Sequence record: NC_035464.1
DNA length: 9,780 nucleotides
Reading direction: 5' to 3' (one strand)
In this document: positions 411 through 9,780 of the stretch, in pieces
Layout: every line of letters starts with the position of its first letter
Numbering within the stretch: the first letter of the stretch is position 1
Notes under the pieces: generated by a model
What the model was told of the DNA's origin: nothing
Seen by the model: the letters and a program-made list of their open reading frames with translations, nothing else
Database searches by the model: none
Position numbers and translations under genes: made by a program

Positions 411-767
411 ATGTCGTCAAACCAGTCTAACCCAAAAAAGGAGGTCTCCCTGGAGGAGTTTTTTGAGGCCGTGAAGGACGAGGTGATCCCCCTGAGAATG
501 ATAGCGGGGGATTACGTAGTCCTAGAGGGCGTCCACATGGAGAACCTCAGGGACGGAAAGAACGGCAAGATAGTTGATGTGGTGGGCAGGATCGTCGTCA
601 CGAACATGGGCCTACCTGAGGGCCAGAAAGTCAGGTTCACGTTAGGCCTCTCGAACGCCATGGAAGTCGCCCATCATATAAAGGACGGCATAAAGTACAC
701 CATGATCAAGAAGGGGGAGATGAGGATAGTTGTTAATGGGTTTAGCGAGATCCCCAAGAGACTCTAG
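411..767 (+). CDS. Hypothetical protein, 118 aa; possible OB-fold ssDNA-binding protein
   Basis: ATG start and first gene after the left ITR. By eye the pattern is beta-beta-beta-alpha-beta-beta (YVVLEGV / IVDVVGRIVV / KVRFTL / SNAMEVAHHIKDG / YTMIKK / MRIVVN). The fold call is inference (about 0.3). Confidence 0.85.
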   Translation: MSSNQSNPKKEVSLEEFFEAVKDEVIPLRMIAGDYVVLEGVHMENLRDGKNGKIVDVVGRIVVTNMGLPEGQKVRFTLGLSNAMEVAHHIKDGIKYTMIKKGEMRIVVNGFSEIPKRL

Positions 768-1083
768 AGACGCTGAGGTATACCTAGTCAGGCCCCTGAA
801 GGGCGTTTTTTCCCTCCAAGACCACGCTTTTCTCGTCACGGTACGTGGCGTCTTCCCACGGAAGGGCGAGTTCACTCGAAAGAGCCACTGGGGCCTCATG
901 GTGGACGTGGACGTGGACGGCCTGTCCCTAAGGTTTAGGTCTAAACTCTACTTCACGTGGCAAGTGGAGATGGGCGGTAGGCCGTGGGCTTTCGTGCCCG
1001 TGTACGGCTGTGCCGATATAATCCAGGAGTACGGATACCAGAGAGGTGTGGCCATATGTCAAAAATTGAAGTTGAGCAGGTAG
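736..1083 (+). CDS. Hypothetical protein, about 115 aa
   Basis: The ORF track starts at TTG 730. ATG 736, downstream of GAGGA (722-726), is preferred. Overlaps the preceding gene; aromatic and beta-rich; no recognisable motif. Confidence 0.75.
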   Translation: MGLARSPRDSRDAEVYLVRPLKGVFSLQDHAFLVTVRGVFPRKGEFTRKSHWGLMVDVDVDGLSLRFRSKLYFTWQVEMGGRPWAFVPVYGCADIIQEYGYQRGVAICQKLKLSR

Positions 1084-1460
1084 TCAAGTACATATTGGAC
1101 CATCCTAGTACCTTCCTATGGTACAGGTGGTACCTGAGACAGAGGCACCACTTACCGTTCTTCTCGCTCACGTACAGTGAGGACTTACGACAGAAGGGGG
1201 TGCCAGTGGACATGACCAGGGATAAGGAGGTAGTCGTGTTGGTGCCTATATACACCCCATACGGCGTAGGCGGTGCTGAGGTCTTGTTGTCTACCCCAGA
1301 TAAGGTTATGTGGAGTGACGACGACTTCGCCTTCTTCGGCAACTGGAAGTTTTACGGGAAGTTCGCGTGGATGGTCTCGCTGAACCGAAAACACCCCCTG
1401 AGGCGGTACGCCCTGAACGAGATGAGGAAGGAGGCGAGGATGTATGCAGGCAAGTCCTGA
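1056..1460 (+). CDS. Hypothetical protein, 134 aa (aromatic- and Arg-rich)
   Basis: Start moved from 984 to ATG 1056, which follows the RBS GAGGTG (1043-1048) and gives only a short overlap with the previous gene. Confidence 0.85.
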   Translation: MSKIEVEQVVKYILDHPSTFLWYRWYLRQRHHLPFFSLTYSEDLRQKGVPVDMTRDKEVVVLVPIYTPYGVGGAEVLLSTPDKVMWSDDDFAFFGNWKFYGKFAWMVSLNRKHPLRRYALNEMRKEARMYAGKS

Positions 1461-2010
1461 CATGGGGGCATTAACCCGCGCAGGGTATAGAGTGACGGCC
1501 CGTTGGACGTGGAACGACGTCACTAGGGCCATGTATTGTTTTGAGACATCTAGGACAGCTAACGACTTCGTGGGGTGCGTCAAAAAGCGTAGGACTGACG
1601 CCCTCGCTGTCTACCGATACCTACGAGACGTCCAGTCCCATCAGGGACTGATATATGAGGTACTCCCGCCCGCATTCCAGGGCAACCCAGAGGAAGAGGA
1701 GGGGGAGGGGGAAGAGACTTGTATCACCTTCGTGGTCTACGACACGGGGTACTTCTTCCTCTGGGTAGACCCTAACCAGATCCTTCAAGACGCCTTAGAC
1801 GCTAACGCGACCATGAGGATCAAGTACCCTGGGGCCTACCGTGTCATCACCACGCCGTATGACCTAGATTTCTCTCAAATAGCGTGGAGGCCCATAGTGC
1901 CGTCGGGCGAGGACTACGTGATATGTAGTAACATGGACCGTGTGGACTTCAGTGACGCGATAGACAGGTACGTCAGACAGCTGAAGGCGATAATGGGGGC
2001 GATATCATGA
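1444..2010 (+). CDS. Hypothetical protein, 188 aa, with an acidic linker (PEEEEGEGEE)
   Basis: ATG 1444 (alternative ATG 1462 just after the upstream stop). Its TGA overlaps the next ATG (ATGA 2007-2010). Confidence 0.88.
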   Translation: MQASPDMGALTRAGYRVTARWTWNDVTRAMYCFETSRTANDFVGCVKKRRTDALAVYRYLRDVQSHQGLIYEVLPPAFQGNPEEEEGEGEETCITFVVYDTGYFFLWVDPNQILQDALDANATMRIKYPGAYRVITTPYDLDFSQIAWRPIVPSGEDYVICSNMDRVDFSDAIDRYVRQLKAIMGAIS

Positions 2011-2336
2011 TCACGTTAGACCACGATGTACCATATGACGGGTATAGACATTCGGCGAAAGGGAAACTCGTCGTTGAGTTTTGCAAGTCGTTCGAACTGA
2101 GGTGTTGGTATAGGCGTTCGTCTACTGGGAACGTCCACGTGGCTATCGACGTGGACGTGGACTTCCTCAGAGAGTTGGAAATCAGGGCCGTCTTACTCGA
2201 CGACCCCATGAGGATATTGAACGACTTGCGTCGGCACGCATTCCACATGCCTACTGGACGGCTCTGGGACGTGAAGGTGGATAGGGAAGGCAAAAGGCAG
2301 GCGGGCCAGTGGGAGGTCTTGTTCTCCCCTGAGTAG
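2007..2336 (+). CDS. Putative minimal AEP-superfamily primase/polymerase-like protein, 109 aa
   Basis: ATGA-coupled start. Motifs occur in AEP order: ITLDHD (hhhDxD; D5, D7), WYRRSSTGNVHV (SxxGxH; H44), LLDDP (D65/D66). The CDS is well supported; the function is inferred (about 0.5). Confidence 0.88.
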   Translation: MITLDHDVPYDGYRHSAKGKLVVEFCKSFELRCWYRRSSTGNVHVAIDVDVDFLRELEIRAVLLDDPMRILNDLRRHAFHMPTGRLWDVKVDREGKRQAGQWEVLFSPE

Positions 2337-2338
2337 GG

Positions 2339-2345
2339 TTTTTTA
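2339..2345 (+). terminator. T6 tract ending the first operon; may also serve as the TATA-like element of the next gene
   Basis: TTTTTTA lies 2 nt after the TAG at 2336 and 31 nt before ATG 2370. Oligo-T tracts are established archaeal intrinsic terminators. Confidence 0.6.
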
Positions 2346-2369: not shown

Positions 2370-2747
2370 ATGAGTCAAAGTCAGCCTACTCAGGAACAAA
2401 CCCCCCCACAAGAGGAGGGGAAGGACGAGAGCCAGTGGACGGAATGTGAAGTCTGTGGGAAGAAAGTGCGGATGAACATGTACAAACGTCATATGTCTGC
2501 GGTGCATGGGTTCATTACGAAAGAGGAGTACCAGAGGCTCAAAGAGGAGGTGGAGAAGACTATACAATCTACGATACACAGTGCACTCCAGGAGCACTGG
2601 AAGGGGCACTACAAAAGCTTAAGCGAACTTCTTGAGGAAGGGGAAAAACATGCCGAGACGTGTCCTACATGCCAAAAGGAGTTGGAGGAGTGGCTCAAGA
2701 AAAAACGGAACGAGAAATACAAACCCGCTAATAGGAAGTGGCTCTAA
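2370..2747 (+). CDS. C2H2 zinc-finger protein, 125 aa (putative transcription regulator)
   Basis: CEVC-x11-H-x4-H at 2445-2507, a second HxxxCPTC cluster and a basic C-terminus. ATG 2370 is preferred over TTG 2361. C2H2 proteins are common in crenarchaeal viruses. Confidence 0.88.
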   Translation: MSQSQPTQEQTPPQEEGKDESQWTECEVCGKKVRMNMYKRHMSAVHGFITKEEYQRLKEEVEKTIQSTIHSALQEHWKGHYKSLSELLEEGEKHAETCPTCQKELEEWLKKKRNEKYKPANRKWL

Positions 2748-3984: not shown

Positions 3985-4314
3985 GTGGACTTCTCCAGAC
4001 AAACGTGGGAGGGGCCAGTGGCTGTTGGCGTCGGCGGGTACGTGTGGAACAAGGTAAAGGGGAACACGCAAGTTCAGACGTTCGTGAGCAAGGTAGGTGG
4101 CAAGACGAATGCAGGGCTCATCTTAGTGGCCCTAGGCGTAGTCGCTAAGGCATACAAACCCGAGTCAGAAGCCATGAATATACTGGGGTACCTGTTGGCG
4201 GGACTCGGTGCGGGGGCACTCGGTGACGACTTGCCCGCCACTGGGTCACAGGCGACGTTTACGAATAAAAGCCCAGAGTACCCTAGTCCAGTTAGTGGGG
4301 TGAACGTGCTGTGA
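3985..4314 (+). CDS. Membrane protein, 109 aa (candidate virion internal-membrane protein)
   Basis: GTG after RBS GAGGTGA (3973-3979); hydrophobic GxxxG-rich segments (AGLILVALGVVA; ILGYLLAGLGAGALG). Confidence 0.88.
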   Translation: MDFSRQTWEGPVAVGVGGYVWNKVKGNTQVQTFVSKVGGKTNAGLILVALGVVAKAYKPESEAMNILGYLLAGLGAGALGDDLPATGSQATFTNKSPEYPSPVSGVNVL

Positions 4315-4724
4315 AACTCTACATGAAAACGATTGAGATCCAATATTCCATCCCTGCGAGTGCACCATCCGAGTCACAGGTGCCTGGAGTGTTCATAGAC
4401 CTCTCCAGTGGCACTAGCCAAGGCCAACTCCAAGTCCCCGTGAACCAAGAGTGGGTCATCATAGACGTCTACAACAGGGGGTCTCAGGACGTCGGCGTAG
4501 ATGCCGTGGCGACGTTCACTAAGAACAGCGTCTCCAACGTCCTCACTACGGACCCAGTCTCATCCCTGAACATCTCGAACCCATCCAGACCAACCTACCC
4601 GCCAATACAGATGGCCCCAGGGACGATATTGACCTCCAAAGTCACTACGCTCACGTCCAACGGCACTAGTGCGGCCGTGGATAACCTATTCATAAAGGTC
4701 AAGATCATAGACTACTCGCAGTAA
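4311..4724 (+). CDS. Beta-rich 137-aa protein; candidate single jelly-roll major capsid protein
   Basis: GTGA-coupled start after GGGGTGA (4297-4303); alternative ATG 4323. Alternating hydrophobic beta patterns throughout (TIEIQYSI, EWVIIDVYN, DAVATFTK, TILTSKVTT, LFIKVKII), no TM segment, last gene of a strongly promoted operon. The MCP call is inference (about 0.5). Confidence 0.9.
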   Translation: MKLYMKTIEIQYSIPASAPSESQVPGVFIDLSSGTSQGQLQVPVNQEWVIIDVYNRGSQDVGVDAVATFTKNSVSNVLTTDPVSSLNISNPSRPTYPPIQMAPGTILTSKVTTLTSNGTSAAVDNLFIKVKIIDYSQ

Positions 4725-5450: not shown

Positions 5451-5734
5451 TGGTGTACCAGATATACGACGGGCAATACACGGTTTACCCCGTGGGAAAC
5501 CCCCAGGTCACGCTCATCAGGGTAGACGTAGCGGGGAGAGTGAAAATCATGATCCTCCCCACGGTGTCAGAGGCCCTTCAACTGACCCTGAACGGAAACT
5601 CAGGTTACCTGAACCAGGGAAACGTCCTCTCGGCGGGAAATTGGTACGAGTTCGAATACGTGAGTTGTGGGAAAGACATCATAAGCATAAATGGGACACA
5701 GCAAGGAGTTTACCTTAGGGTGATAGTGTATTGA
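5447..5734 (+). CDS. Small beta-rich protein, about 95 aa; candidate penton/vertex protein
   Basis: GTGA-coupled start (or ATG 5450); all-beta pattern (TLIRVDV, VKIMIL, LQLTLN, WYEFEYV, IISIN, VYLRVIVY); lies directly upstream of the spike candidate. Confidence 0.85.
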   Translation: MMVYQIYDGQYTVYPVGNPQVTLIRVDVAGRVKIMILPTVSEALQLTLNGNSGYLNQGNVLSAGNWYEFEYVSCGKDIISINGTQQGVYLRVIVY

Positions 5735-6750
5735 TTAGAGGTCAGATACACAAACTCTCCAAGTGGGAGTTAAGGGACTACGCTAGGACACTAGTCCCCG
5801 TCTTTGAATCCCACGAGGTGGACGGCACTAGGGACATGAAAATCGTGGACGCCGTGATATCGTACGCCATGAAAGGGACGAAACCCTGGCTGAGGAGGGG
5901 GTCAGCCCTCCAGGGCTTTATAGGGCCTAGGATGTCTGTCCTCGAGGGTTACCTCATCTTCCCCACGTCAGGTATTGAGCCCGTGACCATCCAGTCCACT
6001 ACCCTAGAGAACTCCTACCTAGTCCTAGATATCGTGGGGGCAGGTGGAGGAGGTGGTGGTGGAGGTGGTGGGAACACCACGGCCACTACCCCGTTCGCCC
6101 AGGGTGGTGGAGGTGGGGGAGACGGTGGCCGTCTCATTATCAGGACCCAGGGGCCACTAGTCTCTGGGACCCAGTTCACAGCCCAACTGGGAGGGCCAGG
6201 TGGGACAGGTGGAGGGACAGGTGCCACAGGGACACCAGGTTCAGCACCAAACGGGGCGACTCAGGTAGTCCTAGGGAACGGCACACTCACGCTCAGTGTG
6301 TCAGGTGCGTCAGCCCCTACCATGCCCCCGACAGCAGGAGGACAGGAGGCAGGAGGGTCAGGAGGTGCAGGAGGGTCAGCAGTGTTCACGTACTTGCCAA
6401 CGACGCCCATATTCTCGGCCATACAGTTGAACCCAAGGACGTCCTTCCTCTCGAATTACTCGGGCGTACTGGACCAGGGTATTGGTGGAGACGGCGTTGG
6501 GTCTGAGTACTTCACCCTGTCCAACGCCACGCCTATATTCGTCTCGACGCCACAAGGAACGAGGGTCACTGGGGGAAGCCCAGGGGGCACAGGCACCTCA
6601 GCCACGGCGAACGTCCCCTCTGGGGCAATCCCGCTCAGGGGGTCAGGTGCAGGAGGAGGAGGGGGACAGAACTCCTCTTCCGCCCCAACAGCGGGAGGGA
6701 ACGGCGGGTCTGGAGGGCCTGGACCTATCATTATCTTGGTGATAGGATGA
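5731..6750 (+). CDS. Glycine-rich spike/turret (receptor-binding) protein, 339 aa
   Basis: TTGA-coupled TTG start after GGGTGA (5718-5723). The pattern hDhVGAGGGGG...GGGGGxGG...GGxGGxGG...GSGAGGGGG...GGNGGSG resembles the glycine-rich domains of phage tail and spike proteins. Confidence 0.9.
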   Translation: MIRGQIHKLSKWELRDYARTLVPVFESHEVDGTRDMKIVDAVISYAMKGTKPWLRRGSALQGFIGPRMSVLEGYLIFPTSGIEPVTIQSTTLENSYLVLDIVGAGGGGGGGGGGNTTATTPFAQGGGGGGDGGRLIIRTQGPLVSGTQFTAQLGGPGGTGGGTGATGTPGSAPNGATQVVLGNGTLTLSVSGASAPTMPPTAGGQEAGGSGGAGGSAVFTYLPTTPIFSAIQLNPRTSFLSNYSGVLDQGIGGDGVGSEYFTLSNATPIFVSTPQGTRVTGGSPGGTGTSATANVPSGAIPLRGSGAGGGGGQNSSSAPTAGGNGGSGGPGPIIILVIG

Positions 6751-9462: not shown

Positions 9463-9780
9463 TTGCGGAAGGTCGTGATGGGGGGGTTAAAATGCTTTTT
9501 GCCCTGTTGGAGAGAACCCTTCACTCTGAGGTTTACTTTCGGTTTGTGTCGTTAAGTGTACTTGCAGGGCGGGGCAGGGCGTATTATGGGCTGTAATTTG
9601 CTCATTCGCATTAGGACAAAAACCCCTGGGGTTAATAAGCTTTCATGCTAGGGGGGGTATTTAAACCCTCCCCGCGTTCAACTTGCGTGGTGATCCGTCA
9701 AACTGACGTGGCTTTTAAACCCCCTGCTCTGGGGGGGGTAGGCTAGGTCTCGCCCTCCCTTTCGGCATGGGGGGGGGGGG
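9463..9780 (-). repeat. Right inverted terminal repeat (318 bp)
   Basis: Reverse complement of 1-318 with two mismatches; ends in G12. Confidence 0.99.

Follow-up and report, generated by a model that had tools for sequence, protein, structure and literature searches.

A virus-only family of small proteins in polymerase-less linear archaeal viruses, with a predicted active site reminiscent of primase-polymerases

Protein-primed replication, in which a terminal protein is paired with a family B polymerase (pPolB) in phi29, PRD1 and adenovirus, or patches chromosome ends in the form of Streptomyces Tpg, operates on linear DNA with inverted terminal repeats (ITRs) and short homopolymeric ends. 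Among linear archaeal virus genomes, that of the rudiviruses is served by Rep (SIRV1 ORF119c), a small dimeric HUH-type initiator. Several other groups of archaeal viruses, comprising the Metallosphaera turreted icosahedral virus (MTIV) group, the SPV3-type viruses, the lipothrixviruses and the SH1/PH1/HHIV-2/HCIV-1 group, have linear double-stranded DNA genomes with ITRs and contain no recognisable polymerase, primase or Rep. In the halophilic viruses HHIV-2, SH1, PH1 and HCIV-1 the presence of terminal proteins without a polymerase gene has been a stated puzzle since at least 2013 (PMC3622292; also PMC4958249), and the missing polymerase gene argues for a mechanism other than that of phi29 (PMC3622292, PMC4958249). 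The 9,780 bp analysed here (the window) are the complete genome of MTIV strain MTIV1 (MF443783 / NC_035464; 100% identity), a linear double-stranded DNA virus of a thermoacidophilic archaeon, originating from Yellowstone. Like the genomes handled by protein-primed systems it has ITRs and short homopolymeric ends but, in contrast to those systems, library scans of the genome found neither a family B polymerase nor a recognisable terminal protein. We show here that c109 (gp05; positions 2007-2336, plus strand), annotated as ‘hypothetical protein c109', is the founding member of a conserved protein family, and propose as the most likely of several readings, while stopping short of calling it probable, that the protein is a single-module nucleotidyltransferase, akin to the archaeo-eukaryotic primase-polymerases (AEPs), that starts viral replication.

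The priming of MTIV replication has been described only as undetermined (PMC5867849), while a mid-2026 preprint on MTIV4, which used structure-based annotation, assigned a function to five genes, none of them in replication (10.64898/2026.06.04.730037). A literature search returned no paper that ties MTIV to a primase; the original description of MTIV was outside the coverage of the search, and a remark there is possible. The c109 gene is ‘hypothetical' in all records and belongs to no Pfam or NCBIfam family.

The 109-residue translation of the gene (MITLDHDV...RRSSTGNVHVAID...AVLLDDPMRILNDLRR) contains D5-H6-D7 at the end of strand 1 (hhhDxD; 2019-2027), which matches motif I of the AEPs, and R36-R-S38-S-T-G41-N-V-H44 in the hairpin between strands 2 and 3 (2112-2138, of which S38-S-T-G41-N-V-H44 occupies 2118-2138), which matches the sxH of motif II. 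Downstream lies L63-L-D65-D66-P-M-R69 (from 2193), leading into the family-specific element D65-D66-P-x-R69-x-x-x-D73-x-x-R76 (2199-2234), an invariant acidic/basic cap and helix 3, and then R85-L-W87-D88-V-K90 at the start of strand 4 (2259-2276), in which F/W-D offers an alternative ‘hD' motif III; all of these coordinates are on the plus strand. A preliminary description of this DNA, made from the sequence alone, had recognized the 109-residue reading frame at 2007-2336 and placed DxD, SSTGNVH44 and LLD65D66PxR where the translation indeed has them, in what proves to be the annotated c109 coding sequence. It had also regarded c109 as the end of the first operon and as the only gene with nucleotidyl-transfer motifs. 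Both statements fit the data, in that five overlapping genes (411-2336) end at a 33-nucleotide gap with a T6 run, close to a recombination breakpoint between MTIV1 and MTIV2, and enzyme signatures are lacking from all the other genes.

Since strings this short will often arise at random, their conservation was tested. Twenty close relatives (72-100% identity, 109-112 residues) retain all the named residues, but retain half of the protein as well. A profile search of 1.84 billion cluster representatives (E<=1e-3) extended the family to 119 clusters at 50% identity, whose representatives are nearly all stand-alone proteins of 105-150 residues, 25-40% identical to c109 and with a mean column identity of 11%. 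Thirteen positions are near-invariant across these proteins: D5 (117/117), D7 (116/117), R36 and S38 (both 119/119), H44 (117/119), R60 (118/119), D65 (116/119), D66 (119/119), R69 and D73 (both 118/119), R76 (115/119), K90 (116/119) and W102 (118/119). As 12 of the 13 (the whole comprising five Asp, four Arg and one each of Lys, His, Ser and Trp) are charged or polar, the pattern is the signature of an active site and not that of core packing. Strong conservation extends to G41 (98/119), R85 (93/119), F/W87 (117/119), D88 (96/119), A99 and G100, while the ‘s' position of motif II (N42 in c109) is N, R or H in the family and is thus only partly ‘small'. The same residues are kept in AFV1 ORF144, AFV2 ORF116 and HHIV-2 ORF30, with Thr at the position of S38 in the AFV2 protein. 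Thus D5, D7, H44 and D65/D66, the residues on which the preliminary description had rested its case, are near-invariant in the 119 representatives and, together with S38, are the conserved core of a real and large family. Two fused members of ~215 residues, P0051 (L011 163-828) and P0090, each pair a normal domain with a degenerate second copy behind it, in which DxD, RxS..H and DD have been lost, a pairing which suggests that the single-domain proteins act as dimers.

The family appears to be confined to viruses. When compared with predicted viral structures using Foldseek, the c109 model gave significant matches only to uncharacterised proteins of archaeal viruses (MTIV2, a 116-aa protein, AFV2 ORF116, an AFV3 protein, AFV1 ORF144, an HHIV-2 protein, SBFV3 and SBFV1), with PSV a weaker match. 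Homologues are found in SPV3, MTIV3, AFV1, AFV2, SBFV3 and all four alphasphaerolipoviruses, HHIV-2, SH1 (ORF41), PH1 and HCIV-1, and the viruses that carry them have linear double-stranded DNA genomes and no recognised replication enzyme. A search of representative genomes from 185,579 species of bacteria and archaea, made with patterns derived from close relatives, detected no cellular or proviral copy. IMG/VR contributed three further MTIV-like genomes, 9.6-10 kb long, in which the gene is located ~2.0-2.2 kb in from the left end. We regard c109 as the prototype of a virus-only, hitherto unannotated family of ~110-residue proteins with a predicted RRM/palm-like fold. In the SPV3 record (L003, OQ473816) there are two copies of the family.

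The fold was modelled with AlphaFold2 from a 124-sequence alignment (pLDDT 96.8, pTM 0.87), replacing a mediocre first model based on 20 close homologues (pLDDT 75.6). The model is a stand-alone RRM/palm-like domain with a strand at residues 2-6, helices at 10-15 and 17-28, strands at 33-37 and 43-47 separated by a loop (38-42), helices at 53-62 and 67-78 separated by a second loop (63-66), and strands at 89-92, 95-98 and 103-106, and it agrees with the order of strands and helices that the preliminary description had guessed around the motifs. DxD ends strand 1, R36-x-S38-x-x-G41 forms the hairpin turn, H44 starts strand 3, R69, D73 and R76 lie along helix 3, and F/W87-D88-x-K90 starts strand 4. 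Assuming the usual RRM strand order, the topology predicts that the conserved positions all gather at the same edge of the sheet. The arrangement of the predicted active site would recall the catalytic, RRM-like half of an AEP, with the DDxxR...DxxR helix cap and the (F/W)-D-x-K strand putatively replacing the usual motif III strand.

Of the enzymes compared with c109, the ORF904 Prim-Pol of pRN1 (PF09250; 1RNI/3M1M) comes, as c109 does, from a Sulfolobales mobile element. The two proteins have in common a strand ending in hhhDxD/E, a helix, a strand, a turn of small residues and Gly, and a strand bearing the His, with 39 residues between motifs I and II in c109 (D5-H44) and 34 in ORF904 (D111/E113-H145); in the SGxxGxH of PriS-type enzymes, Ser and Gly precede the His as S38 and G41 do in c109. 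ORF904, in contrast to c109, has a ~70-residue (alpha-beta)2 unit before motif I, a zinc stem and a fused helicase, and its motif III strand (D171) comes straight after motif II, where c109 has a helical hairpin with DDxxR...D..R instead. A homologue search with the excised ORF904 domain returned only three homologues, and the template used in hhalign was a Prim-Pol alignment of ORF904 relatives and six phage Prim-Pols. The c109 family aligned to this template over 62 columns in order (score 20.3, P=0.0069). I2-D7 fell on ORF904 108-113 (D5/D7 on D111/E113), S38-H44 on the H145 hairpin and D73 on D171. This alignment scores about 5 z units above those to 150 block-shuffled templates (11.5 +/- 1.6, maximum 16.5); the reversed template scored 14.1, and an unrelated alignment, that of a188, scored 11.9 against the same Prim-Pol template. 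Motif II of the family fell on that of the Prim-Pols in all runs, and its motif I did so in the better ones only, a shallower template recovering motif II alone (P=0.084).

Catalytic domains of AEPs make up 15 of the top 34 Foldseek matches in the PDB and have the highest TM scores in the list (0.35-0.39, query-normalised), all below significance. They comprise LigD PolDom, Prim-PolC, African swine fever virus (ASFV) PrimPol and Sulfolobus solfataricus PriS, which are the best PDB matches of c109 by Foldseek rank and TM score over the two models, LigD PolDom having been found with the first model also. All are two-module enzymes of 280-330 residues, of which ~60-90 columns align with c109 at a root-mean-square deviation of 5-10 Å. 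KH, acylphosphatase and HPr folds and adeno-associated virus (AAV) Rep68 appear among the same weak matches. A Pfam scan of 124 family members gave no recurring match; among the noise were single-member, weak matches to two AEP families, Herpes_UL52 (E 0.041) and DNA_primase_S (E 0.062). As a calibration, the Prim-Pol profile was run against the PDB and matched no AEP structure other than ORF904. As this profile misses other AEPs by sequence, the absence of hidden Markov model matches for c109 says little.

A number of observations weigh against assigning c109 to the AEPs, or to replication at all. No similarity to an AEP is statistically significant by sequence, profile or structure: Pfam, NCBIfam and PADLOC gave no match to c109, PHROGs returned only the protein's own family of unknown function, a sequence search of the PDB found nothing, and Foldseek against the PDB yielded no significant match (best E 0.44, TM <= 0.39). 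With the gappier A2 alignment, hhalign gave P=0.1 and covered only motif II to D73, and the pairing of ORF904 D171 with D73, which lies inside a helix, is structurally doubtful. The preliminary description had taken D65/D66 for motif III, an assignment that the model makes doubtful, as the pair sits in the helix-helix loop (63-66) and not on a strand. The structural counterpart of motif III may be F/W87-D88, which opens strand 4 and conforms to ‘hD', with D88 kept in only 96 of 119 representatives. The N-terminal (alpha-beta)2 module is missing, DxD occupying residues 5-7 of 109; homologues have from a few to about 25 residues at most before DxD, and the model starts with the DxD strand. This unit is listed as a defining half of the AEP core (PMC4538821, PMC10345425), and the primase-proficient Prim-Pols studied to date all require accessory domains (PMC10345425). 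For MTIV itself no terminal protein has been demonstrated (PMC5867849). The c109 protein is not among the virion proteins annotated in the MTIV records. In addition, AEP primases favour purine starts, whereas a 3'-G12 template would need CTP or dCTP. The AEP identity put forward in the preliminary description thus survives in part: the order and spacing of motifs I and II, the hhalign result and the predominance of AEPs, as the commonest and highest-TM entries, in a weak Foldseek list speak for it, while no comparison is significant (E >= 0.44 in Foldseek, nothing in Pfam). The c109 protein putatively works like the RRM-like half of an AEP, and may descend from it, without being a canonical member.

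Other catalytic folds and arrangements were considered and rejected. The order of motifs in the minimal Pol-beta nucleotidyltransferases (hG[GS]x9-13Dh[DE]h) is reversed in c109 (DxD at 5-7, SxxG at 38-41), and that fold is absent from the Foldseek results. A PD-(D/E)xK nuclease would require the string of D66 and D88-x-K90, which is split by a helix, and no nuclease fold is in the Foldseek list; HAD phosphatase, Cas2-like and serine-recombinase-like readings misfit in motif order or fold, and none occurs in the Foldseek lists. The only PDB profile matches were to the SH2 domain of SPT6 (E 0.34-0.7), through IRxSSxGxxH, and were treated as chance, which disposes of an SH2-like phosphate-binding module. 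It could be argued that the N-terminal module is supplied by the upstream gene a188. A frameshift fusion of a188 and c109 is excluded, since the frame relation differs between the viruses (a to c in MTIV1, b to c in MTIV2) and the genes merely overlap or abut. Nor does a188 resemble the missing (alpha-beta)2 unit (hhalign against Prim-Pol, P=0.43).

The position of c109 with respect to the genome ends bears on its role. The MTIV1 genome begins with a 318-nucleotide ITR (1-318) that opens with C12 and has a second C-run, C8-AGAGCA, at 47-60, and ends with the matching 318-nucleotide ITR (9463-9780), which closes with G12 (9769-9780). The first (early) operon, annotated as c118, a115, c134, a188 and c109 (411-2336, plus strand), with each gene overlapping the next, lies inward of the left ITR. 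Between 2401 and 9450 MTIV1 and MTIV2 (L002) are 100.0% identical, but identity is only 40-66% in the right ITR and across 1-2100, which takes in the left ITR and the first operon with the 5' part of c109. Identity rises through the 3' part of c109, placing one recombination breakpoint inside the 3' end of the gene. The ITRs and the first operon have thus been swapped between the two viruses as one module. That they diverge together ties the operon to the ITRs, and their exchange as one unit is what would be expected if proteins of the operon recognise the ITRs.

Homopolymeric C/G ends are a hallmark of the MTIV group. The left end of MTIV2 is C11 (L002 1-11), and MTIV4 has a terminal G11 (preprint 10.64898/2026.06.04.730037). 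A distant 15-kb relative has a terminal C8, directly adjoined by the sequencing adapter in one contig, and its terminus, CCCCCCCCAGAGCA (L006 17-30; L009 1-14), recurs as an identical string inside the MTIV1 ITR at 47-60. A distant c109 homologue, P0023, is located 1.6 kb from the left end in four independent contigs, one of them the contig with the adapter. Self-priming by 3' fold-back was considered and rejected, as the terminal hairpin of MTIV1 is no better than those of shuffled sequences (z 0.35) and the end of MTIV2 forms none. The terminal G8 tail of the distant relative is adjoined by a perfect 12-bp hairpin (L009 1-60, minus strand; z -5.2 against shuffles). Across MTIV1, MTIV2 and the L009-type virus there is no conserved 3' fold-back able to self-prime, the strong hairpin being found only in the L009-type genome.

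We propose that c109 is a Mg2+/Mn2+-dependent, two-metal nucleotidyltransferase in which D5, D7 and either D65/D66 or D88 would hold the two metal ions, while S38, H44, R36, R60, R69, R76 and K90 would bind the triphosphate of the incoming (d)NTP and the DNA. Synthesis would begin at the homopolymeric ends of the ITRs, the 3' ends of which are G-runs. There c109 could make a short primer, couple an initial nucleotide to a priming protein or tail the 3' end, and a host polymerase would then continue. The protein would act probably as a dimer, together with the translationally coupled a188, which may provide recognition of template or terminus as accessory domains do in other Prim-Pols. Should the protein prove active, primase/polymerase-type catalysis would gain a new lower bound in size, and there would be a bearing on the idea that AEPs arose from a simple RRM-like domain. 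As the proteins of the family are small and stable enough for easy purification, the question of how these viruses replicate lends itself to a direct bench test.

The same data can be read in other ways. Invariant carboxylates accompanied by His, Lys and Arg suit hydrolysis equally well, and c109 could instead cleave or nick DNA in a metal-dependent manner, as a relative of the rolling-circle Rep endonucleases that is RRM-like and has no catalytic Tyr. It would cut or resolve replication intermediates at the ITRs, for example to make a 3'-OH for a host polymerase or to resolve concatemer junctions, which is the task of the small dimeric Rep in rudiviruses. Rep offers only a functional analogy in its size (~110-120 residues), its RRM-like fold, its probable dimerization and its work at the genome ends of a polymerase-less virus, and the c109 gene is co-inherited with the ITRs in a family that is likewise small and probably dimeric. 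Furthermore, AEPs and HUH endonucleases have a common RRM-like fold (PMC4538821), and AAV Rep68 was among the weak PDB matches. In contrast with Rep, however, c109 lacks the HUH motif, having a single His (V-H44-V-A, strand 3), and has no conserved Tyr in helices 53-78, where position 77 is L, Y, F or H. The Rep structure is absent from the c109 Foldseek list, nuclease folds do not appear in the Foldseek lists, which are dominated by AEP polymerases, and the RxSxxGxxH hairpin looks like motif II of the AEPs, which binds the nucleotide. A nuclease is, on this evidence, an unlikely identity for the protein. Still less likely, in our view, is that the resemblance to AEPs is convergent or coincidental, c109 being a generic ferredoxin-like domain whose conserved residues serve unrelated chemistry. 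All AEP comparisons are indeed below significance, KH, acylphosphatase and HPr folds occupy the same match lists, and the IRxSSxGxxH of the SPT6 SH2 domain shows that such strings recur. It is difficult, however, to reconcile coincidence with an hhalign score 5 standard deviations above the shuffled controls, with AEPs that are more numerous and higher scoring than the generic folds in the Foldseek list, and with a specific match in motif order, spacing and secondary-structure context.

Two further readings remove c109 from polymerase-type catalysis altogether. It may be an enzyme with no part in replication, such as an anti-defence or host-takeover protein that acts on a nucleotide or signalling molecule, in which case its place in a variable, terminal early operon would be typical of the counter-defence genes of archaeal viruses. 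Comparison of MTIV1 with MTIV2 shows a hypervariable left arm, terminal regions of archaeal viruses that carry anti-CRISPR genes are often hypervariable, AcrIII-1 is a small and widely conserved viral enzyme with an anti-defence function, and contact of c109 with DNA has no direct support. The invariant residues are, however, maintained from viruses of the Sulfolobales to those of haloarchaea, which face different defence repertoires; ITRs and operon were exchanged as one, PADLOC gave no match, no known structure of a ring nuclease or phosphodiesterase was matched, and such weak structural affinities as exist point to polymerases, all of which makes a non-replicative enzyme improbable. It could also be argued that c109 is not catalytic, and is either a binder of DNA ends or origins or the terminal protein itself, in which the hydroxyl of S38 would be linked to the 5' nucleotide by a host enzyme or another viral enzyme. 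S38 is invariant (Thr in AFV2) and six basic residues are conserved. The alphasphaerolipovirus relatives carry terminal proteins whose identity is unassigned (PMC3622292), and papovavirus origin-binding domains are RRM-like and related to AEPs (PMC4538821). Five invariant Asp residues are nevertheless hard to account for in a mere DNA binder, known terminal proteins have no such signature, and c109 is not annotated as a virion protein, so that a purely binding or terminal protein seems very unlikely.

Returning to c109 as an AEP-like nucleotidyltransferase, a broader form of the proposal, which we consider possible but somewhat doubtful, is that the family is the shared replication-initiating enzyme of polymerase-less linear archaeal viruses, where it would nucleotidylate a terminal protein or prime or tail the homopolymeric ITR ends. 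On that reading no smaller polymerase-type enzyme would be known, and the protein might represent, in free-standing form, the RRM-like unit out of which the AEPs arose. The groups embraced by this reading are the MTIV-like and SPV3-type viruses, lipothrixviruses, ungulaviruses and alphasphaerolipoviruses. Among them SH1, PH1 and HHIV-2 carry terminal proteins (PMC3622292), as protein-primed systems do. The c109 family links virus groups whose linear genomes, bounded by ITRs, come without a recognisable replication gene.

The genes that flank c109 are conserved with it. The ATG of c109 overlaps the stop codon of a188 (1444-2010, plus strand) in the sequence ATGA, an arrangement of translational coupling that makes a188 a candidate partner. 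In MTIV3 and SPV3 the c109 homologue is immediately preceded by a homologue of a188, with homologues of c125 and c153 downstream. The a188 protein gave no match in any library scanned. It has in common with its homologues a basic block at the N-terminus (GYRIT..W..D...C...N.F..C..RRTDALA..RYL), a linker of acidic character and four conserved Cys, and may bind DNA or zinc as a partner of c109. In SPV3 the frame upstream of ORF13 contains a run of undetermined bases, and the a188 homologue there is probably mis-annotated as the shorter ORF14.

Downstream of c109, the 33-nucleotide gap is the first intergenic gap of the MTIV1 genome and begins with the T6 run (2340-2345, plus strand), read from the sequence directly 3' of the stop codon, which is likely to be an archaeal terminator and/or a TATA-like element for a leaderless c125. 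The conserved neighbour c125 (2370-2747, plus strand) is a zinc-finger/zinc-ribbon protein, as judged by library matches and synteny, with a C2H2-like finger near the N-terminus and a CxxC zinc-ribbon-like motif near the C-terminus (weak Pfam matches to DUF7576, zf-Di19 and DUF7575). A c125-like gene follows the c109 homologue in SPV3_1 and MTIV3.

Elsewhere in the MTIV1 genome the library scans revealed no recognisable packaging ATPase. The virion protein a339 (5731-6750) matches the Pfam glycine-rich domain PF21722 with a score exactly at the cut-off (24.3 bits). For the structural protein c137 (4311-4724) there is a match to VP4, the Sulfolobus polyhedral virus 1 major capsid protein (PF25646; E 7.3e-5), at 22.9 bits against a cut-off of 27 bits, a below-cut-off match that hints at a common capsid protein lineage for MTIV and the portogloboviruses.

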